This document shows, piece after piece, positions 6,832 through 25,965 of a stretch of DNA of 32,000 nt (its first letter is position 1; every line of letters starts with the position of its first letter). The DNA is taken from positions 75,495 to 107,494 of the forward strand of contig MTSL01000134.1 in NCBI GenBank assembly GCA_002794465.1, written 5' to 3'. Both the position numbers and the translations under genes were made by a program. This DNA comes from Paramicrosporidium saccamoebae KSL3. Its lineage: Eukaryota > Fungi > Cryptomycota. Under the pieces are notes generated by a model that was not told where the DNA came from, made no database searches, and saw only the letters and a program-made list of their open reading frames with translations.

Positions 6832-7499
6832 TCACATTGTAAATGGCTTCAGTGGGCCTACATAAATGTTAATGGTAATAGAAAAGAGATGCCTGTGTGG
6901 GGTTTGTAGCCAAGACCCTTCTTAAGACTCTCCTTCAGATCAAACTTTTTGCGCGCTTCGGCGGGCTTTACTTCGATTGGGTTTGTAGGAATCTTGGCAA
7001 CTTCGGGAGCCTTTGGCTTGGCGCCATTAGCGTAGGGATAGAGTCGACTGGAAGGGCCAGCAATTGTGACTGTAGTCTTCTTAACAGGCACAGTGGGTTT
7101 GAGCTGTGCTCGTGGGATGGCAGAAGGTCTCCTGGGCGAAGATCTCACTGCGGTTGTCGCAGTTATTGTCTGTAACACGGCGGGATTGGCGGCAGTGTCA
7201 ATTTGAAGTTTCTCCAGCTTTTCTCTCGTCTCGCCAATTTCAGCAAATTCCCCATCTTCCTCCTCTACTGGGGAATCGTCCATGGTGTCTTCTTCAGCAG
7301 AACCCTCTGGAATCTCATCCATTGCCCTTCCAACCCGAAACAATTTCTCAATCAGTTCAACATTCTACCAAAACATCACGCATCAAACAATCTCAACCTT
7401 CCCAGTACCCTTTATATCGTGTTGCTTGCACAGCGCCTGTAGTTCCTTCCTCTTGCAAGTTTCCAAGAACACGCGCTCATACGGCGCTTGCGATTCCAT
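6832..7499 (-). CDS. NUSAP1: NuSAP-like microtubule/chromatin protein
   Basis: N-terminal SAP-like ELQALCKQHDIKGTGK|NVELIEKL (intron 7397-7365). C-terminal KKFDLKESLKKGLGYKPHTG|PLKPF matches the NuSAP FDLKxSL..PLxYxPHxGxLKP motif after removing intron 6892-6858. Confidence 0.75.
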
Positions 7500-7528
7500 T
7501 CAAGAAAAGAAAACTAATTTAATTACAA

Positions 7529-8809
7529 ATGCCCGCGGAGATGAAGGACACTGTGGAGTATCTGCAGTCATTGGCTGCGGTACGTGAGCGTTGCGAGGCA
7601 GTGTTGGAGCTGGGCTTGGCAGACAAGTTGGAATGTTTTAGTGTCAGGTTGGATAAATTGCCAGAGGCTGCGGAGATGATTACAAAGTTGATTATTAGGG
7701 ATTATGGTAATGTCGGGCCTGCAGAGGTTGATTCGACGATTGCAAACATTCCACCGCATGGAAGGTGGCGTCATTTTGGAGCTGAGAATGTAGAACGGTT
7801 GATTAAGGAGCTTGAAGTGGCGCTCAACGGAGATAAGATAAAGATTACAACATCGATGCTTGATCTGTTCATTGTGGCAGTATTATTGGATGCAGGCGCT
7901 GGCGATGCCTGGAAGTACAACGATAATGGAAAGACGATTGTTCGCTCAGAGGGACTGGCAGTGGCGGCTCTCCGTATGTTTCAGTCTGGATTATTCTCTT
8001 CGTCAGAAAAGCTGCGTGTTGACTCGAGGGGATTGAAGAATTTAAAAGAATCAGATCTCGTAGCTGGATTCCAGGTGAGCCAAGATAATCCTCTGCTTGG
8101 TGTTGGTGGAAGACTTGCTCTCTTACACCAACTGGGAAACGTCATTGAGAAACAGACGCAATACTTTCCCAAGGACTCTGAGGGATTTTCTCGCCCGGGT
8201 GCATTGGTAGAGTATTTGACCACAAAGCAATCTGCAAAATCCCAAGTCCATATTGACGTCTTTTGGGATCTGGTTATTAATGGTTTTGGAGGAGTTTGGC
8301 CTGAATCGCGGACAAAGCTGAACGGCGTCTCTTTGGGCGATGTCTGGCCTTGTGCAGTACTCGGGTGTCTGATTCCATTCCACAAACTGTCTCAGTGGCT
8401 TTCATACTCTCTAATGGAGCCAATCTCGTACTTTCTCGGGATCGAATTTGTCAATGCCGAAAAGATGACCGGTCTTGCAGAGTATCGAAATGGTGGCCTA
8501 TTCGTCGATTTGAGTATAATTACCCTTAAGGAATCAGCCAAAAAGTATGGAATACAATCTGCAGACTTTTCCGTTCCGACATTTGCTCCTGACAGTCCGG
8601 TGATTGTCGAATGGAGAGCCCTCACTGTTGCACTTATTGATCGATTAGCCATTCTGATGCGCAGTCAATTAAAGGTCAATGCAGAATGCCTGCCGCTCCC
8701 AAAGCTCCTGGAGGCGGGGACATGGAAGGCGGGTCGTGAGATTGCCAAGCAGCTGCGCCCGGGAGGTGGGCCGCCAATCGCGCTCCTTTCGGATGGCACC
8801 TTATTTTAA
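7529..8809 (+). CDS. URC4: DUF1688 protein (Urc4/Urg3-like, uracil catabolism associated), copy A
   Basis: LLDAGAG, RSEGLAVA, GDVW, FHKLSQWLSYSL, TGLAEYRNGGLF, EWRALTV, LEAGTWKAGRE. Confidence 0.88.
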   Translation: MPAEMKDTVEYLQSLAAVRERCEAVLELGLADKLECFSVRLDKLPEAAEMITKLIIRDYGNVGPAEVDSTIANIPPHGRWRHFGAENVERLIKELEVALNGDKIKITTSMLDLFIVAVLLDAGAGDAWKYNDNGKTIVRSEGLAVAALRMFQSGLFSSSEKLRVDSRGLKNLKESDLVAGFQVSQDNPLLGVGGRLALLHQLGNVIEKQTQYFPKDSEGFSRPGALVEYLTTKQSAKSQVHIDVFWDLVINGFGGVWPESRTKLNGVSLGDVWPCAVLGCLIPFHKLSQWLSYSLMEPISYFLGIEFVNAEKMTGLAEYRNGGLFVDLSIITLKESAKKYGIQSADFSVPTFAPDSPVIVEWRALTVALIDRLAILMRSQLKVNAECLPLPKLLEAGTWKAGREIAKQLRPGGGPPIALLSDGTLF

Positions 8810-11043: not shown

Positions 11044-11400
11044 TAAACTGTTTAATGACCGAGGTGCAGCTCTTTGGCTTGATTAGTCCCTACTCTGTTG
11101 TCAGAATGATCGAGTTTACCACGCTACACCCAGATTGGTACAAGCCGCTTAATCAATGCTTAGTGGCCGATATGCAACTCCTTGATCTGATTAGTCCCTA
11201 CTTTGTTGCCAAATTGGTCCAGGCCGCTTAATAAATGCTTAATGACCGAGGTGCAGCTCTTTAACTTGAACAGTCTCTGCTCTGTTGACCGAATGGTCGA
11301 GTTTACCACGCTACACCCAAATTGTTCCAGGCCGCTTAATAAACTGTTTAATGACCGAGGTGCAGTTCTACTTTGATTTCATTAGCCCCTACTCCTACTT
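11020..11400 (+). repeat. Four degenerate copies (79-109 bp period) of the RPA3-stop / GST-kappa-start junction
   Basis: CC(A/G)CTTAAT(A/C)AA..TTA-ATGACCGAGGTGCAG..T(G/C)ATTAG(T/C)CCCTAC recurs, with start-codon positions at 11055, 11163 (GTG), 11242 and 11351. Confidence 0.88.
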
Positions 11401-12068: not shown

Positions 12069-13222
12069 TTACGTATGGTAACTCTTGACTCGCGAGAATA
12101 AAAACCTGTTCCAGTCTCGAGTCTCGAATTCATAGACACTCGGCAGACCATCCCAAGAGATGGCTGGGGAGACAGAGACGTATCGATTGCAACTCAGAGC
12201 ATTGTGTTTCAGCTGGCTGAGCTCCATCTCAAAGAGCGAGTTGTGTGTGGATTGCGGATCATAGAGAGTGAGATGCCATTTGCGATCGACTGGGCCATAG
12301 CGAAAGTACTTTCCAACAAACATATTGGTCTTTGAAAAGGCAGAGAGTTTGCCTGTCGGAGCTTTCCTCTTTACGCCATACGGAGATACCAAATCAATAG
12401 CTCTGACACCAAACGGAACAAAATCAGGCAGGTCGGGCAACTCTTTCAAAAGACTGACAATCTTCTTCGGCTCCTCGGTGGTAACTAGCAAGACTACGAC
12501 ATTTCCAAGCTCGGCAGGGAACATTCTCAAATATCGATAATAGGTGACCATGTGCACTGGCTGATAGAACTGACCATCATTCATTCCGGGTCGAAAATAG
12601 CTCAGCTTGCAAATATAAACGCCATCCGTCCGCAGTCGTGGCTCCTCAAAGTATGCATTTCGATAAGACGTGGTGGGTCGCGTAAGGGACGGATGTATAC
12701 ACACACGGGTGGTATGGTACATGTGACGCCAAATTTGAGGGCTTCGCGAGTATATAAAGAGCCGTTTGCATGTCCGTGCGCACTCTTCAAGAGAAACGGC
12801 ATGATTTGTGCCAACCCACAGCAGAATCCTCACCATCACTTCTGCCGGAAGATTCAGCGGTTCGTACTCTCCCACCTCCAAACTGAGTTCAGAAAGCAAC
12901 CCGGGCACAACAGCCTCAAACTTTGGCTTCTTTGCTTCACACACCTCTACTGGCGGGATGTTTGCCTCTTGTGTATTGACAACACGGTCAACATCAGGAT
13001 TTAGTCGGAACGCCTTTTCGTAATACTTTATCGCTAAAATGTTAGTACTAAACATCAAATACCTTCTGAAACTTGTCCCAGACGTTCTAGCTCTGACGCG
13101 CGCAAGAAAAGCTCTACGTCGCGTGAACAACTCCCAGAGGCATCCCCTAGTGACAGTTTCGCAGTTTTCTGTACAATATCAATGGCGGAGGAATGTTTGG
13201 TCGGGCTTGCACTAGACGACAT
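12069..13222 (-). CDS. HRT3: F-box protein Hrt3/FBXO9
   Basis: TPR-like EAIKYYEKAFRLNPDVD (after intron 13062-13034), F-box LPAEVMVRIL..SLEECARTCK, and PRLRTDGVYICKLSYFRPG..HMVTYYRYLRMF. Alternative start at 13249. Confidence 0.88.
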
Positions 13223-13420
13223 GGCGGACTCACGAGGGCCAATCATCATTTCCTTATAGAAACATGGACCAATCAGAGGTGAATATGGACGGCTATGAGC
13301 GGATCATCTACATCTTTATTTCTTACCGTCCTTTTCGTCTTGTCCAAACACTTGGGCTTCACTCCCGTTATACTAGTGGGGAGATATCCGTGTGAGCAAA
13401 TAATCTAGAATCTATAGTCA

Positions 13421-14958
13421 TTATTTCTTGTCGTTCTTCTTCGTCTTATTCAAATATTTGGGCTTCACCTCCATTGTATTAATGGGAAGGTATCCATTCT
13501 TCGGTTGGTGTGGCCATAGATCGCCCCATTTGGACTTTCGTGCATCATAGTAGATTTGTTTACCCTGTGAGCGGGGGACGATGAGCCGTTTAAAGGTGCT
13601 GTCTGTGGCACAAATGTCGTTGACAATGTGTCCTTGTCGCTTCAGCGGCCTTCTGATCAAGCGAGGCCACTGAAAAGACTTTTCTGAGAGACTAGAATCC
13701 TCAGTAGGCACTGGACGGGGCCCGCGACGGAGCACTAGATAACTAAATTTCTGATCTACAAACCCCTTTCCAATGGGATGTGTTTCCGTCTGGAACTTGG
13801 AAACTTCGATTCGCTGCGAAAAATGACACCAGCTCCCTATCATGGGGCACTTTTTCTCATGTGGACAAGGCGCCACAATGTGCAGCTCACACCCTCTGTT
13901 AGACCCATCGGAAGCCTCGCCATTCTCGTCAAGGTAGCCTTCTTTGTTAAGAATCTGTCGTCTCGCGTTGGCAATGACACGTGAGCCTTCTGGGGTGCCA
14001 CGATCAATCAACACCAAAATGTCGCGGGTCTGTTCCCACAAAGCGTCCACTGTCATTTTGCGAACCCCATCATCGGGCAAGTCGCCCAGTGAGAATGCCG
14101 CAACGGTCAAGTCGTACTGGCGGGGTCGTGCTGCCAAGGAAAGAAACCGTCGTAGCTCAATCGTATCAATTGGGTTATCAGCGTCGCGTCTGATGCTAGT
14201 GAGCAGTTTACGGGCCATTTGGAGCATTGGCTCGGAAATGTCTACGCCATGGATAGACTTGAGACTATTTCTCCAAGTCTGCTCTGTTGCCCTACGACAT
14301 AATTGACTAGAGAGTAATCGAATACAGAATAGCAGTGGCGGGACCAGTCCCAAAGTCAAACATATTTTGTGGCTTGAAATCTGGAAGCCGCTTATGTACA
14401 TCTGCAAAGACGCGCTCTAGACAGCCATATGCAAATGGCATCTGCCATGCCACATAGGCCATAGTTTCGCGGTCACCGTATTCTAAGATTGTCCTCGGCA
14501 GCTCATCCGGGTCTAAAGGTTATCGTCCAGTAAGACTGGTACGGATGACAAGCGGAACGCCTGTAGACCGCATTTGCGGCAGTATGTATTCGGCCTTGAC
14601 CTTGCAGGCTTCCTTGCTGACCTCTAGCAAACGAGATACATCTGGTTTGAGGATGTGTCGAGGATAGCCTGCAGTTGAGAAATGGCTCCCATGTACCTTT
14701 CAAGACTTGTTCCACGGCAGACATGACGTCGGCAGGCATTTTTGTCAAGTTTGGGTGGTTCTTCCCAAGCAAGTATTCAGCCGTATGACCCTTTTCAATC
14801 GCATTCATAAAAGACTCTTTGACGGACTGGAGCCTTTTGGTGCTGAAACGGCGCATCGAGAAGCCCCAAGCTTTGGGATTCGGCATGGGCTCGACAGTAG
14901 AATCTGTAAACTTTTTCCAAAACTCAGTACGCATTGTAGCCAAGATCTCGACAATCAT
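13421..14958 (-). CDS. RSM22: Mitoribosome small-subunit assembly methyltransferase Rsm22/METTL17
   Basis: Three introns (28, 30, 34 nt) join the exons in frame. Motifs FDFGTGPATA, GTPEG, APCPHEKKCP, WCHFSQR, FSYLVLRRG, WPRLIRRPLKRQGH, YDARKSKWGDLWP. The start may be the Met at 14934. Confidence 0.9.
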
Positions 14959-15351
14959 TCAGATTAGGATCACTGAGCACACGGGATAGTGTGAGGGCCG
15001 ATATAGATTTGTACAACGAGTTATAGTTGCGAGATGGTATGTCTACGGACCAGGACTCCGATAAAAGGTCTTATTACTGTCGCGTAGCGGGGATAAATAG
15101 TATTGACTGTCAGGCAAGAAAGGGGGGTTTGTTTACTGCTACTCTTAGAATAGTGTGGATACACATCTCACTGTTCTCAAATACCCAGCAACTAGGTCTT
15201 CTCCAAACTAGGGAACTATTCTCAAATACCCGACTAATCAGCACTCTACGTCACATTACTAATCTTGCAATAATGTTAGGCATTGTCTATATCAACAACC
15301 GTTGTAGACACATCTTTGCTAAGCATTCAATTTGATGAAACTTTACTTATA

Positions 15352-15454
15352 GATTAGTATCGACGCCTCGATTCAACAAGGCTTTAATGATGGATTAGTA
15401 TCGACGCCTCAATTCGGCGAGGCTTTAATGATGGATTAGTATCGACGTCTGGCA
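15352..15454. repeat. 41-bp tandem repeat (2 full units plus 1 partial) that duplicates the HD1 stop codon region
   Basis: GATTAGTATCGACG starts at 15352, 15393 and 15434. On the minus strand each unit ends AG(A/G) CGT CGA TAC TAA (RRRY*). Confidence 0.9.
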
Positions 15455-15882
15455 TTTATGAACCAGTTGTCTAATTGCTTGAGATCTAGTCCCGTTTTCT
15501 CCATAAGTATCTTCTTCTCGTCTCCCGTCGGAAATGGGTGATCTTTATGCTCCTCTAGCCACATCAGTAAAAGCTTTCGTACATGAGTAGAATGATTTGG
15601 TCGGCGCTTACTAGCTGCTTGTACGTCGGAGTTCATATTGTCAAGCTTCTCAATTCGGGCAACTCTGGCCAAATCAATAAAGTGCTGCATAAGGACAAAC
15701 AACATTTTCTCCATATACTGATCCATAATAGTCCCACAGGTCCCTCGAGAGCTGCCAAAATAATTTTCCAGAATAGCCGGAAGCTCCACGAGTAGCTTAG
15801 ATGATTCCTTGTCTGCAGTATCAAAGGTTCTTGAGAGTAATTCTATAGCCGGAAAGAGCGGATGGGCAGTGATAGCAGTCAT
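15436..15882 (-). CDS. TALE-class homeodomain protein (HD1-like) with MEIS/KNOX (MEINOX)-like N-terminus
   Basis: LLLMWLEEHKDHPFPTGDEKKILMEKTGLDLKQLDNWFINARRRY: W19 to W48 spans 32 residues, i.e. the 3-aa TALE loop is present; I50. The N-terminus has AITAHPLFPAIELL and MDQYMEKMLFVLMQHFIDL. Confidence 0.93.
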   Translation of the reverse strand: MTAITAHPLFPAIELLSRTFDTADKESSKLLVELPAILENYFGSSRGTCGTIMDQYMEKMLFVLMQHFIDLARVARIEKLDNMNSDVQAASKRRPNHSTHVRKLLLMWLEEHKDHPFPTGDEKKILMEKTGLDLKQLDNWFINARRRY

Positions 15883-15924
15883 TCCGCGGCTGGGTGGCTG
15901 AACCTAAGCCAGCATTTCAAGCTT

Positions 15925-16388
15925 TGACAGCTTTTCCTATTATGCACCAATCATCAGATTTGATATCTTGATTGTGATCACTCGAAAATTGAAAAGCGAA
16001 TGTTTAAAAGTAGCTAAAAGTTTTACGGATACTTTCTCTTCTGTGCTACTAAAGCTTCTTGTGAGTAATTATACAGCCGAAAAGAGCGGATGGACAATGA
16101 TGGTGACTTGGCAATTGGGTGGCTGAATTCAAGCCATCCTTGAAAAACTTTGACAGCTTATATTTAGGATCCTCAGCCACCAAATACCAATGGCTCGATC
16201 TTGGTCATTTGGTATTGACTTTATTCAATTGTCGAATCGTGATTAACGGAATGTCGTCTTGTAACAAAAAGTTATGGAATCTGACACAGCTGTGCTAGGT
16301 TAGTATGGAGAGACAATGCTGTACAAAATTGTTTTCATCTTTGTCAGTCACATATCAGCCACCACCTGTCAAACATGTCAAACTGACA
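15925..16388. promoter_or_regulatory. Cluster of TALE-type TGACA(G) sites in the bidirectional HD1/HD2 spacer
   Basis: TGACAG at 15925 and 16151, TGACA at 16282 and 16384, TGTCA at 16342, 16367 and 16376. That is 7 sites in 540 bp, against about 1 expected for a 5-mer on two strands at uniform composition. Confidence 0.65.
16030..16160 (-). pseudogene. Relic copy of the HD1 5' end
   Basis: The minus strand reads HPLFSAV*LLTRSFSSTEEKV against HD1 HPLFPAIELLSRTFDTADKES. GAA has become TAA and the ATG is lost. Confidence 0.85.
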
Positions 16389-16422
16389 ACAAGATCTTGC
16401 GCCCGCCTTATGCAGCCAACAA

Positions 16423-17259
16423 ATGCGCCTCTTTCTTCAGCACACCTCAAGGACCAAGAGTGTAATAGATGAAGCTGTGAGTGCATTTAAACGCCGCAAT
16501 CTGGCTCAAGCGAATCTACTGCTCCAGCAGAATTTGCTTGAAGCTCGTGATATTCATCAGGAGCTTTTATTGGAGGCATCAACTAAGCTGGCAAATGAAC
16601 ATCTTGCCCAGTACGCTCGTTTCGTGCGTACGCTGTCCGACCAGGTGGATCAAAAGGTTTCAGATGTCAATAACACTGGAGCTAGTGTGCAACGTCTGCT
16701 TTTAGTGACCCCGACAGCTCTGATGCAAATGAGCGTCGTAATGTTCCGATTCGCAGTTGCAAACCGCCTTTATCGGTTCCAAGTCAAAATCCTGGAGATG
16801 AGTTTTGTACACAACAGCCTGCAATCAACTGTTCTGACAGCAAAGAGGTTTTCAAATGACATTATCTCTACGTTAACGTCGAGCTACTCTGCTGATTCAT
16901 ATCCTGGCTTGCCTGAAGTGGCCCGCTTGGGACGTGTGACAGGCCTGGGAGAGCGTCAGATCGTAATGTGGTTTACTAATCGTCGCTCTCGCACCAATAA
17001 CAAACGCAGCCGGTCGGGGAAATCCTGCGACCATGAGATCCTGAGCGACGCCAACACACTCTCGCCACCCGACAGCCCCAGTTCAATGATCAGTTTTCCT
17101 CCTCAGCATCGACAATCCCAACTTTCTTCTGATGACAACTTTTTCCAGGAAAGTAGCCGGCAAGCAGAGTTGGAGTTTTACAAGACCATGGTCTGCAATA
17201 ACACCCGCCATCATTGGGATGACTATGCAGAGTTCTTTGCTGATATTGGTAGACATTAA
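16423..17259 (+). CDS. Typical (non-TALE) homeodomain protein (HD2-like)
   Basis: KRFSNDIISTLTSSYSADSYPGLPEVARLGRVTGLGERQIVMWFTNRRSR: F8, L16, Y25-P26, L40, W48-F49-N51-R53 at 60-aa spacing with no TALE loop. Helical N-terminus of about 135 aa and a Ser/Pro plus acidic C-tail. Confidence 0.88.
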   Translation: MRLFLQHTSRTKSVIDEAVSAFKRRNLAQANLLLQQNLLEARDIHQELLLEASTKLANEHLAQYARFVRTLSDQVDQKVSDVNNTGASVQRLLLVTPTALMQMSVVMFRFAVANRLYRFQVKILEMSFVHNSLQSTVLTAKRFSNDIISTLTSSYSADSYPGLPEVARLGRVTGLGERQIVMWFTNRRSRTNNKRSRSGKSCDHEILSDANTLSPPDSPSSMISFPPQHRQSQLSSDDNFFQESSRQAELEFYKTMVCNNTRHHWDDYAEFFADIGRH

Positions 17260-17273
17260 TTTTGAATACAGCA

Positions 17274-17658
17274 TCAAATCTTTTTCATCAGACTTCCAGC
17301 ATCTTGAAGGATGGCTATTAGTGGCGCAGGGATGTTTTTGTTTAGGGTTCCTTCCGGTAGAGAAAATGGAAGGGCGTCTGCTCTTATCTTTCTCTCATCA
17401 AAGGGGGTTTCTGTCCTTGTCTCAATCCTAAAATCATGACTCGTTACATTGTACATACGGAAAGGATGCTGTGGAATTCAAAACTAATCTCTGAGCCTCT
17501 GGCGCCGTGTCAATATCAGTGTTTGGCATGAAAAATGAAAAGAGGGAAGAGCAGCAGTTCTTAAGACAGGAACAGGAGCAGCAGTCCTGAAAACAGGAAG
17601 GGGAACAGCAGCTCTCGAGACAAGAAGAAAAACGGTGGTCCTCAAGATAAGATATCAT
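17274..17658 (-). CDS. Small spliced orphan protein (117 aa) with a Cys-rich N-terminus
   Basis: Canonical GTATGT...TTTTAG intron 17458-17428 (31 nt) joins track ORFs 17434..17658 and 17274..17456 in frame. The N-terminus is four 27-bp/9-aa repeats. Confidence 0.6.
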
Positions 17659-19265: not shown

Positions 19266-19520
19266 GTGGGAATATATATACGAATTAGATGCGTGGGGAC
19301 GTATGTACGAACTGGATGCGTGGGGACGTGTGTACGAATTAGATGTGCGATAATATATATACAATTAGATGCGTGAGAGTATATATAAATTAGATACGTG
19401 GGGATGTATTTACGAATTAGATGGGTATGAATATGTTTACAAACCGGATCTGCAAGAGTATATTTACGGACTGGGTCATAAATTTGCGGACTGGATCTTA
19501 AATAATGGATCTGCAAGAGT
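19266..19520. repeat. Degenerate minisatellite of about 27 bp (about 8-9 units) between the convergent RPC25 and VTA1 ends
   Basis: Consensus approximately GTGGGGA(C/T)GTAT(A/G/T)TACGAATTAGATGC. Confidence 0.85.
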
Positions 19521-19578: not shown

Positions 19579-20562
19579 TTACTTCCTCGGTAAGCTGTGT
19601 AAAATGCTCAATGCAGACTCGAGATTCTTGATCGCAGTTGCAACATCTTCAAACTGGATTGCACTGATAGCAAATCTAGCATGTTTCTCTGCACTCGATA
19701 GTGCCAAAGGGTCTACTACGGGGGACACGGCAGCTGGGATCTGCAACGGGGACTGAGTTGGTTGGACTGTCACTGGTCCTGGAATGGTGATTGCAGGAAG
19801 AACAATTGGAGGCGACGTTCTATGAAAAGCTGTATCTGTCGCCGCACTCTTATTAATATCTGTTGGCATAAATGTCGGACACGACATTTGATGGTTGGGC
19901 ATTTTCGTTGTGTCCGCCGTCTTGTTTATCGTTTCGCTCGTTGTTCTCGGTTCAGGATCAAACTGAAACTGTCCAGACATTGACGGCAAGTGTCCTCCCC
20001 TGCTCACTTCGTCTATTTCTTGGATCTTTTCCGCCGATCCAGGCGGTCCAGACAGCGGCTGCTTGCCCTCATTGAGTGATTTGACAATATCTGACGCCTT
20101 CCATTTTGCATATCGAATCCTCTCCTCAATCTCCTCCCCTAGCTCGCCCAGTCCACGCATGACCTCTAGAAATTGCGACGCAACGAGAAAGAGACGTCCA
20201 GTTTTCTTAGTGGCCTGGCCAGCACGGTCCTCGTTGTCGGCAGCAAGGAAAATGCGACTGGCGAATTGCAGTATAGCTGCGCGGGCCTGCTCGTGGTCGT
20301 GCATTGCAGGTTCGTTGCTAAGAGCCTTCTTCTCCTGCTATCTTAGCACTAGTCAAAGGTTGATTACCTGCTCCAGCTCGCTAAAGAGCGCTTTAATAAA
20401 GGCATCATTTTCAGGAGATTTCTGGTATGGCTTGCACAAAGCAATACTCACTGCATAGTAGCCACAGTAATATGCAATGACTGGCTCACGGGTTTTTAAT
20501 TCTGACGCTCGCTGCAAGTAGGGCAAGAGGTGCCTAAAATCTTCAGGACACTCGGGGAGCAT
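19579..20562 (-). CDS. VTA1: ESCRT/Vps4 regulator Vta1
   Basis: LLPYLQRASEL..EPVIAYYC, FLAADNEDRAG..FLVASQFLEVM..IRYAKWKA, and C-terminal AEKHARFAISAIQFEDVATAIKNL. Intron 20367-20338. Confidence 0.95.
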
Positions 20563-20612
20563 GCGGGATTTGCAGCAATTTTCCTTTTATTATCCGTAGG
20601 ATACATGCACAA

Positions 20613-21295
20613 CTAACTTGACATATAATTCATGGCCAGCACCATTACAGCGAACACAAGGATCATGAGAAAACCAATCAGATGCGAATTGTTTAGCCCA
20701 GATTCCATCGGTCTGGGCCGGACACTGGGTGGCAATGGTGGGGGTATCTTTTCGTCATCTGCACGGGGCTTGGGCTTGTATCCACAGCTGCGACATGCAA
20801 AGGGACGTGACGAATAAGCCAATTGCTGTCGTTCCTCGGCCGACATCCCAACATATCCGATGGCACCACGATCTTCCACCGTAAAATGATCCCGGATGGC
20901 GATGAGCATGGTACGCACCCCCCACGCCGGTTGCCAATGCTCCGGATGGAACCCAGTGACAGACAAACATATCTTTGTGCCTGTTTGGAAGCGTCCGCTA
21001 GGAGTGAGGAACATGAGTGTGGGTGGCGAGAAAGGATAGTCTGCAGGAAAGATAAGACGGCCGTGGTACAGACCATATTCATAGGGACTCTCGTTGGGTC
21101 CTTCAAGTGTAAAATGCCATTCTAAGTAGTTGTCCTACACGTAAATACAAGGCCGTTGGCCATACCTCTAAAGGATGCACAGTAAAGGGAAGGTCGCGCA
21201 GGTTCTTGTCTATTTCATCAAACTCCTTCTTTAGCCTCTTAATAGCTATTGTTGAGCAGCTTGGTAGGAAAGGTACCTGGATTATTGCGCGACAT
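20613..21295 (-). CDS. UBC6: Tail-anchored ubiquitin-conjugating enzyme Ubc6/UBE2J
   Basis: MSRNNPAIKRLKKE..HPLE|DNYLEWHFTLEGP..TPSGRFQTGTKICLSVTGFHPEHWQPAW with a C-terminal TM helix. Introns 21276-21246 and 21165-21135. Confidence 0.93.
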
Positions 21296-21366
21296 TTCGT
21301 CGTGGCAGCTATTCCAGAGGCTTCGGCCACGGACCAATCACCACTTATGGGGCGAATTACCTTGGT

Positions 21367-22553
21367 TTATTCCAAATATGGTGTACTTACAATCTGTTCT
21401 AAATCTTCGCACAGCTCTTGCCAAGAGTACTCTTTTCCAAATTGCTGCTTTACTCCATGGTCCGATCTAATTCTGTTTAGTACGCTTCGCTTTACATATC
21501 TCCGAAATTCCGTCTCGTCAGAAGAATCTAGCGATAGCAAGGCGGATGAACTTTGCAGAGATGAATTGGCAGTGTCGGACATGTAGATTGAAACGCCCAA
21601 ATAGTCACTCTCTTGTTCTATAGAATCAGCCCTTCCCAACTTCCAAGAGCTCCTCTCAGCATTCCCGAGGGATCCCAGGACAGAAAAGTTTTTCAAATTG
21701 TTTGTGGGAACCTTGCCTTGAGAAGCTGTGCCAAATCCGACCTCTGATATACCAAGCGGCATTTTCTGAATTCCACAGTACGGGAAGAGATTTGGTGTGA
21801 CAAATGTCTCGAGTAGCCCTCCAACTAGACAAGAACTTTGAAGATTAAACGACAGAGAGTCGTCAAAAAAGAGCGGTAGCAACCGATTCGAATATTCATT
21901 CAGACAGGTCAGGTTTATCGCCTTGTCGGCTACGCAGCCTCGATAATCAGGATCAAAGCCAGTAAACAGAGCAATAGTATCACAAACTCTCACGCCGAGA
22001 TTGTCTTTTGCCAATGTCAGGAATGATGTGGACAGTCCACCCCAGAAACCCACCGATTCTGTAACAGTCAGAACCCTCTCGAGACTGTCGCATTCCTCAG
22101 CAGCCAGACGCAAAGCATCTAGAGCAGTTTCTTGACACTGTGCCGTCGCTTCTATTCCAGCTTCGTGTAGACCAGTGTTCTCAACCGATGAAAAGATGGG
22201 AACATTTGTGGGAATGTAGCTTTGAGGAAGATACTTTGTAAAATTGAACCGTTGCCAGCCGCTTAGCTGGCTTGGTGGCGCAGATACCTCAGATTCGATA
22301 ATCATGCTCTTTTGATGTGTCTCAAAAACTACAGTTCTTGGAGTTGACTAGAAAGATTAGGACCCAACCTTGTGGATGTACTCTCGATCCTAGCAAGGTA
22401 TTGAACAAAGTCTCGTCATTTGAGTGGTAAAGCTTTGCCTGCTGGCTCTAAAAATATAGCAAACACAAGATTGGATACAATAGAATTCCAAAAGTGAGAC
22501 AAGGACGTATTAGCAGAATCGCCAAACTGCAGAACGATAGTCTGACCAGCCAT
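21367..22553 (-). CDS. DML1: Misato/Dml1 tubulin-FtsZ-like protein
   Basis: MAGQTIVLQFGDSANTSLSHFWNS, TPRTVVFE and LRLAAEECDSL..GFWGGL. Two introns (31 and 34 nt) lie upstream of the track ORF. Confidence 0.85.
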
Positions 22554-24812: not shown

Positions 24813-25965
24813 TTATTTCTGGCGCCCAAAGATGCGTTTTGCAAAAGATTGCAGCACGACACCTAGTTTTCTATTGCCATTTCCAACACTTTCAATCCGG
24901 AGAGAGAGGGCATCTTGATATGATTTTTCAAACAACCGGAACTCGGATTGCAAATCCAGATCATTATAGATGCCCCTGACAACAGCCTCAGACTCTATAT
25001 TTTTCTGTCCGTAGTGCTGTGCCAAGGAAGCGCGCATTTCCGCAGTTAAATTCTTGCTTTTCAAAGCCGTAACGATAAGCCAGGTGCATTTTCCTTCAAC
25101 AATATCAGTTCCAATTTTACCAATCACCTTGGGGTCGCCAAAACAATCGAGATAGTCATCTTGAATTTGAAACAATTCTCCCAGATCAATTAGAACCGAT
25201 TCTAATTCGGGTAAAACGGCTTCTTCAAAATATCCACCAACGAGAAGTGCGGCGATGACAGGCAGGTAGAACGAGTAATAAGCCGTCTTGAATCGGACAA
25301 TCCGACGATAAAGATCCATACTAAAACGGTTCAAATCGCGTGGTCCGTCCACAGGAGCCGTTAGCAGGTCCAAAAGCTGTCCTAGCTCTGTGCGCATTTT
25401 CGTATCAATGAACAATTCGAACAGAGGGACGTATGCCGGATTCTTCCCAAAGAAGCGCCTGAGGGTCCTGAATATCATTGAATGGAGGACGAAACAGTCG
25501 TTGATGGCCACCATTCCAACCTGTTCAGTGCGATACCAACATTCTTGGCCGCGTCGGGTGAGAGATGAATCCATGATGTCATCAGCCACCAAGAAAGATG
25601 CCTGAAGCTACAAAATGACAAAACAACAAGTCGACTACCCACTCGATACACCACCCAAGGGCCACGTATGCTTGCTGCTCCGCAGGCGAAAGCTTTCCCT
25701 CACGCATAACGGCCCCAGTTTCTGCCACGCTAAGCCCTCTATTCATCTTTCCTATAGAAATGCGTGAGCGTCCTAGGTATGTCTAGATACCTCCCAGCAC
25801 ATTATAGTCGCACATTTTGTCTATCCATCCTGAGGCAGGCTCTCCAATGCCAAGTTTCTTCATCTCCTCAAGAAAGTCATTTTTCAAATCCTTGTATGAG
25901 CGGTCGAATTCTTCCCGGAAGGGGCTCATGGTCTCGACCGGGAAAAGCGTCTCTATCCCGGCCAA
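24813..25965 (-). CDS. ERG20: Farnesyl diphosphate synthase
   Basis: YNVLGGKMNRG, LQASFLVADDIMDSS (FARM), FQIQDDYLD, GTDIVEGKCTW. Introns of 39 and 31 nt. Confidence 0.96.

Follow-up and report, generated by a model that had tools for sequence, protein, structure and literature searches.

Does a pair of homeobox genes arranged head to head in the genome of an amoeba parasite represent a mating-type locus, a joint regulator of some other kind, or simply two neighbours? Paramicrosporidium saccamoebae is such a parasite, from a lineage that is sister to the other fungi, and the question arises from a 32,000-nucleotide stretch of the genome of isolate KSL3 (assembly GCA_002794465.1, contig MTSL01000134.1, positions 75,495 to 107,494 of the forward strand), hereafter the window, to which all coordinates below refer. 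Here a TALE homeobox gene on the minus strand (HD1) and a typical homeobox gene on the plus strand (HD2) diverge from a shared spacer of 540 bp, and both proteins are encoded exactly in this contig. The two genes, PSACC_01945/01946, were published in 2017 by Quandt et al. as HD1/HD2 homologues in a basidiomycete-like layout (PMC5701793). The same authors reported that P. saccamoebae is diploid with a full meiotic gene set, and that the diploid isolate lacks both heterozygosity and allelic divergence at the pair (PMC5701793). The pair and its mating-type (MAT) analogy, to which a sequence-only reading of the window had come independently, are thus a rediscovery, already in print with a negative heterozygosity result. 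What is added here is modest detail: conservation of the pair in uncultured relatives, its pattern of selection, MEINOX-like motifs in HD1 and motifs in the shared promoter. We favour a co-regulated, divergent TALE/non-TALE pair whose proteins probably act as a heterodimer to regulate a transition in the life cycle, a reading to which we give about an even chance of being right; none of the results supports a self-incompatibility locus.

The identity of the two genes is clear. HD1 (15436-15882, minus strand; Pfam Homeobox_KN, 1.6e-18) encodes a protein of 148 amino acids and corresponds to either PSACC_01945 or PSACC_01946, as the publication names only the pair. Its homeodomain (residues 91-148; 15439-15612, minus strand) is of TALE type by the 63-residue criterion, with WFIN.RRR and isoleucine at position 50 (I50), and its nearest solved structures are PKNOX1 (2.5e-12), TGIF2LX and MEIS1/2. 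The spacing between helix 1 and helix 2 is that of MEIS, PKNOX and TGIF in alignments to Protein Data Bank (PDB) entries; those to PKNOX1, MEIS2 and TGIF2LX span the position of the three-residue loop, with no gap there against TGIF2LX, and the three-residue gap in the PKNOX1 alignment is placed further towards the N-terminus than the loop. The PDB matches retrieved were MEIS, PKNOX, TGIF and PBX, with MATalpha2 not among them, and the nearest named TALE homeodomains belong to ichthyosporeans, insects (PKNOX2), oomycetes and chytrids. Judged by these alignments, the HD1 homeodomain is MEIS/PKNOX-like. The protein stops at WFINARRRY, eight residues past the conserved W48 of the homeodomain, and has no C-terminal tail. 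The highest-scoring matches to HD1 (P0051, P0052) were proteins of unknown source that carry six to seven tandem TALE-like homeodomains per chain.

HD2 (16423-17259, plus strand; Pfam Homeodomain, 1.3e-10) encodes 278 amino acids, and its homeodomain (residues 136-195; 16828-17007, plus strand) has the recognition helix QIVMWFTNRRSR with threonine at position 50. A manual check placed W183 at position 48 and found the standard 60-residue spacing, with no three-residue loop insertion; together with the Pfam assignments and the coordinates, this loop spacing bears out the head-to-head TALE and typical homeobox pair, 540 bp apart, that the sequence-only reading had described. The nearest solved structures are DUX4, ZHX3 and HHEX, and MATa1 was not among the PDB matches. 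The first 135 residues are predicted to be helical by AlphaFold2 (AF2), at low confidence and from a two-sequence alignment, and no Pfam domain was found in the N-terminal 138. Beyond the homeodomain lie a conserved, proline-directed SPPxSP (17062-17079, plus strand; HD2 family alignment) and an acidic and aromatic C-terminal motif, DDNFFQE..QAELEFYKTM....W..FAEFFA (17128-17256, plus strand), whose columns are invariant in all four members of an HD2 family alignment that are otherwise 30-37% identical. The latter may be an activation or interaction domain.

Is the pair a feature of this one genome, or of a lineage? Searches with both proteins against a collection of 15 billion proteins gave one metagenomic relative each, and more distant orthologues were reached solely through homologues of the neighbouring Rsm22 gene. 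The relatives compared are the metagenome contigs L003 and L004 (JGI), L008 (ENA), and L092 and L007 (Logan); contigs L005, L006, L011, L093 and L094 stop short of the homeobox region and were left out. Scanning metagenomes with the alignment of the HD2 family gave no confirmed match. L003 and L004, which overlap at 99.5% identity and jointly cover window positions 15407-17567, represent the closest relative and carry the same divergent pair. Against it, HD2 has a synonymous divergence (dS) of 0.58, a nonsynonymous divergence (dN) of 0.15 and a ratio (omega) of 0.27. By domain, the N-terminus is 70% identical (omega 0.33), the homeodomain 75% (0.29) and the C-terminus 73% (0.16), so that in this between-lineage comparison the N-terminus shows no hypervariability against the other two. 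HD1 is more diverged at silent sites (dS about 1.2) and has an omega of about 0.15 (0.16 over its first 31 codons), with a homeodomain that is 86% identical at an omega of 0.09. The non-coding DNA beyond HD2 is 82.5% identical, and a flank diverged by some 17%, taken with the dS and omega values, marks the closest relative as another lineage and not an allele. HD1 and HD2 are real, intact genes under purifying selection along their whole length.

Further out, L008 (Rsm22 62% identical) and L092 (54%) keep the window order of RPA12(-), HD2(-), HD1(+), Rsm22(+), F-box(+). In L007 (Rsm22 70% identical) HD2 adjoins Rsm22, and HD1 lies beyond Rsm22 on the opposite strand, both genes being intact and within 3.1 kb of each other. 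L007 also has two extra reading frames without a family match (409 and 215 amino acids) between RPA12 and HD2; these and the moved HD1 are the changes seen at 681-2937 and 7122-7592 of that contig. The divergent pair and its flanks thus recur in three uncultured relatives and are linked, not divergent, in a fourth; the adjacency that had been put forward as a test in relatives holds in L003/L004, L008 and L092 and fails in L007. The pair is conserved across an uncultured Paramicrosporidium-like clade, down to 30-37% HD2 identity, which extends the published statement.

The region ahead of the HD1 homeodomain (15667-15882, minus strand) is predicted to be helical, again in a low-confidence AF2 model from a two-sequence alignment, and profile comparison picks out two MEINOX-like motifs in it, AHPLFPAIELLSR (residues 6-18) and MDQYMEKMLFVLMQHFIDL (residues 53-71). 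Homology of these to the MEINOX domain would be of note, since Joo et al. (2018) describe MEIS/KNOX homology from several Amorphea lineages "but not from Fungi" (PMC6219170). The window protein alone matches Pfam Meis_PKNOX_N, at E=0.005-0.015 and 16-18 bits, below the curated cut-off of 27 bits; nine N-termini of the HD1 family and of chytrid proteins gave no MEIS or KNOX match in Pfam at E up to 10. With MEIS and KNOX templates validated against Pfam, a ten-sequence HD1-family profile in hhalign scored 25.8 for the first motif against MEIS-A, a value reached by none of 200 column shuffles but over only 13 columns, and 14.0 for the second against KNOX2, reached by two of 200 shuffles and over only 17 columns. 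Members of the HD1 family are small proteins of 148-166 residues, in which an N-terminal HPL(F/Y) and a second motif, an amphipathic helix (E.YLE.. or MDQYME..), precede a TALE homeodomain; they terminate one to nine residues past RRR. The two N-terminal motifs are common to the relatives and to chytrid TALE proteins: those of B. salamandrivorans (KAH9273986.1) and Polyrhizophydium stewartii (KAJ3423018.1) have both, namely the HPLY motif and the second helix (VTLVHQIID against FVLMQHFID), with RPNHS...WFINARRRYL ends. MEINOX homology of the HD1 N-terminus, resting on short matches, is suggestive and not established, and the shared motifs suggest a TALE class common to early-diverging fungi.

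The spacer shared by the two genes (15883-16422) is a presumed bidirectional promoter, and several motifs are enriched in it. The octamer CAGCCACC occurs at 15893, 16118, 16174 and 16356, so that four of its six copies in the window lie in the spacer (0.81 copies are expected per 32 kb). CAGCCAC is found near both start codons and has four of its nine window copies in the spacer, which is 1.7% of the sequence (P about 1e-5); it is likewise concentrated in the spacers of L008 (3/3, P=6e-4) and L092 (2/2, P=4e-3). TGACAG, the core site of MEIS and other TALE proteins, stands at 15925, 16151 and 16366 (three copies against 0.39 expected), and TGACA occurs seven times against 1.5 expected. In the window, L004, L092 and L007 a TGACAG is found 20-80 nt ahead of the HD2 start codon, and in the window and L092 an AGCCAC is followed 3-4 nt on by CTGTCA, which is TGACAG on the reverse strand. 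Pairwise alignment shows the block immediately upstream of HD2 (16345-16405, plus strand), CAGCCACCACCTGTCAAAnnTGTCAAACTGAyAACAAGATCTTGCGCCCG, to be kept in the closest relative. These patterns suggest conserved co-regulation, and possibly autoregulation, of the pair. One of only two CAGCCACC copies outside the spacer (25583-25590) sits in the 40-bp promoter from which the polyprenyl synthase and HMG-CoA synthase genes diverge, so the motif may be a general promoter element of the organism and not specific to the homeobox genes.

The length of the spacer had itself been read as unusual, a claim that holds only in part. Most other divergent pairs in the window are indeed only 31-40 bp apart; one, however, is separated by 206 bp, intergenic gaps in the annotated stretch run from 19 to 1792 bp, and some 226 bp of the spacer (the copied segment may reach about 16255) is a duplication. 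This has copied the first 28 or so codons of HD1 with their leader, and the second copy (16028-16159, minus strand) is a degenerate pseudo-exon with a stop codon and no ATG, recognised from the direct repeats D2, D3 and D7, which match copy 1 (15800-15933) at 77-93% identity and a spacing of 225-228. The closest relative has a single copy of the segment and a spacer of 316 bp, and copy 2 keeps several states in common with that relative that copy 1 has lost. At the other end of HD1, the non-coding tract that the sequence-only reading put at 475 bp measures about 477-501 bp, depending on where Rsm22 starts, and 107 bp of it are a tandem repeat. The 41-bp unit, present in 2.6 copies (15341-15447; Tandem Repeats Finder score 165; repeat family D1), runs over the last four HD1 codons and the stop codon, and re-creates them as CGTCGATACTAATC three times. 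The closest relative has apparently one copy of the unit, at a point where its contig ends.

How, then, might the pair act? HD1, reduced to a homeodomain and the short helical domain ahead of it, would be a minimal TALE protein of MEIS/KNOX-like kind that with HD2 forms a TALE/non-TALE heterodimer, the manner in which fungal HD1/HD2 proteins and yeast a1/alpha2 act. HD1 would help the dimer to bind DNA cooperatively at TGACAG-type sites, HD2 would bring an effector domain, and the dimer may both regulate its own promoter and govern a transition in the life cycle or in development, for example a diploid or spore programme. With both partners in cis and the sequenced diploid homozygous, a regulator without self/non-self discrimination is the most likely form of this in the present isolate. 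A conserved TALE/non-TALE pair in the sister lineage of the fungi, especially one with a MEIS/KNOX-like TALE member, would offer a way into the sexual cycle of Rozellomycota and microsporidia, which has not been observed.

Several observations weigh against this reading. The two single-chain AF2 models have a low mean confidence (pLDDT 59 and 48), and the HD1-HD2 complex is putative. The promoter motifs were spotted by eye ahead of testing, so that the tests in relatives are the meaningful ones, and in the distant relatives TGACA counts are at chance level. L007 has no shared promoter, its HD1 and HD2 being separated by Rsm22, and since the relatives keep the entire neighbourhood collinear, adjacency of the two genes is no proof of functional coupling. 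Finally, HD1 of the closest relative (about 1040-1090 of L004, a single contig) has a 26-nt deletion, located between codons 31 and 41, that throws the conserved first 31 codons out of frame with the remainder; at the junction both frames contain stop codons. This could be a recent inactivation or an assembly error, or the gene may use an internal start. A short intron that would rescue the frame was considered and rejected, as the 43-nt candidate would excise in-frame conserved residues; a deletion or an assembly error is more likely than an intron.

The collinearity leads directly to the main rival explanation, which is possible if somewhat doubtful: two independent homeobox factors with separate targets and no heterodimer, neighbours only through the collinearity of a compact genome region. 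RPA12, Rsm22, F-box, DSBA and DUF1688 genes are equally syntenic in the relatives, HD1 and HD2 stay intact when parted by Rsm22 in L007, and none of 80 metagenomic TALE loci recovered by an HD1-family scan (most on contigs under 3 kb) had a non-TALE homeobox beside the TALE one, whether looked for by tblastn or by a scan for WFxNxR. Such independence sits poorly with the enrichment of CAGCCAC, close to both starts, in the spacers of three diverged lineages, and with the genes still lying within 3.1 kb of each other in L007. Furthermore, TALE proteins are classically obligate partners, and it is difficult to see how one of 148 residues that lacks an effector domain would act alone. A different objection to the heterodimeric regulator is that the locus may be dying: the duplications at both ends of HD1 in KSL3 and the frameshift in the relative could be signs that the lineage is now asexual and that the remains of its former mating system are decaying. 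Both KSL3 frames are nevertheless intact, omega is 0.09-0.33 in every partition, the HD1 N-terminus included, and intact orthologues are found at up to 70% amino-acid divergence. This selection pattern makes decay very unlikely.

The sequence-only reading had proposed a MAT-like ploidy or mating switch. In its strict form this would be a multiallelic, basidiomycete-style MAT locus, with divergent N-terminal alleles, dimers formed only between non-self partners and a post-mating trigger, the isolate having become homozygous through selfing or endoreplication. It would account for the divergent TALE and typical homeobox genes, as found in Ustilago b and Coprinopsis A (PMC2866331), for the diploidy and meiotic genes of P. 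saccamoebae (PMC5701793) and for the conservation of the pair across relatives, and the modelled helical N-termini could serve as dimerisation domains. The results do not support the proposal. That the locus is monomorphic, an outcome named beforehand as counting against it, has in part been reported already, in the form of a diploid isolate without heterozygosity or allelic divergence at the pair (PMC5701793). In the protein collection each protein's 90% cluster has one member, leaving no second allele on record; the sister metagenome contigs are only 0.5% apart; the closest relative, with a non-coding flank also diverged by 17%, is another lineage; HD2 divergence is even across domains (omega 0.27-0.33) with no N-terminal hypervariability; and the solved structures matched by the homeodomains are MEIS/PKNOX and DUX/ZHX, with neither alpha2 nor a1 among them. 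We consider it quite unlikely. A related idea, that the locus shows an ancestral state, draws some indirect support from the clade-wide conservation and the MEIS/KNOX-type HD1. In its full form it would make the pair an early surviving version of fungal HD1/HD2, in which the TALE partner keeps a MEINOX dimerisation domain shared with chytrids, and which serves Rozellomycota as a zygote or diploid switch, or as MAT in outcrossing relatives. This is unlikely; if true, it would tie the heterodimer switches known from plants and animals, KNOX/BELL and MEIS/PBX, to the TALE/non-TALE heterodimers that determine mating type in Dikarya.

Around the pair, the flanks named by the sequence-only reading were both verified, with Rsm22 below HD1 and RPA12 after HD2. 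The 100 nt directly 3' of the HD2 stop codon (17260-17360) are 90% identical to the closest relative without a gap, above either coding region, and could be an element of the 3' untranslated region, the RPA12 promoter or a small gene. A minus-strand reading frame of 60 amino acids (17274-17456) that overlaps this block is open in both the window and the relative. A structured RNA at 17260-17360 was rejected, its fold being no better than shuffled sequences (z = +1.3) and without a match in Rfam. Across the window, Rfam and tRNA scans gave no matches, and a scan for bacterial-type promoters and terminators, irrelevant for a eukaryote, stayed at chance level. Two deposited gene models apparently fuse neighbours: F-box with Rsm22 (811 amino acids; 12069-14934), called as separate genes in the relatives, and Vta1 with a ubiquitin-conjugating enzyme (787 amino acids; 19579-22305). 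AT-rich nested tandem repeats with periods of 27, 78 and 105 nt lie between the Rpc25 and Vta1 genes (19266-19467), and the DSBA-like gene is preceded by a 79-bp unit, repeated twice (11130-11287).

Set beside known systems, the locus resembles in outline the basidiomycete HD loci (Ustilago bE/bW, Coprinopsis A, Cryptococcus Sxi1/Sxi2). The structural analogy is real, and was made earlier by Quandt et al. (PMC5701793): adjacent, divergent and closely spaced TALE HD1 and typical HD2 genes, whose homeodomains are both preceded by a helical N-terminal region. The Paramicrosporidium pair differs in having no reported allelic polymorphism or hypervariable N-terminus, in a tiny HD1 that ends inside helix 3 and has a MEIS/PKNOX-like homeodomain, in its Rsm22 and RPA12 flanks and in a heterodimer that is putative. 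Within the same fungal lineage, the homeobox clusters of Encephalitozoon cuniculi also consist of adjacent homeobox genes and were proposed as MAT (Burglin 2003), without distinct alleles among isolates (PMC2866331); Quandt et al., however, state that the pair organisation is not conserved in microsporidia (PMC5701793). Arbuscular mycorrhizal fungi likewise have a homeodomain pair outside Dikarya (HD2 with an HD1-like gene) that is considered MAT-like by its layout, but this putative locus has multiple divergent alleles among isolates and dikaryons where none are recorded for the Paramicrosporidium pair (PMC11414155). The MEIS/PKNOX-PBX system of animals and the KNOX-BELL system of plants and algae offer a comparison of another kind. 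The candidate partner next to HD1 is a non-TALE protein without a PBC or BELL domain, and the MEINOX match of HD1 falls below the Pfam threshold; in common with these systems, HD1 has a homeodomain nearest to PKNOX1, MEIS and TGIF, HPLFP and (L/M)DQ(F/Y)ME-type motifs that follow one another as MEIS-A/KNOX1 and MEIS-B/KNOX2 do, and TGACAG sites in its own promoter region.

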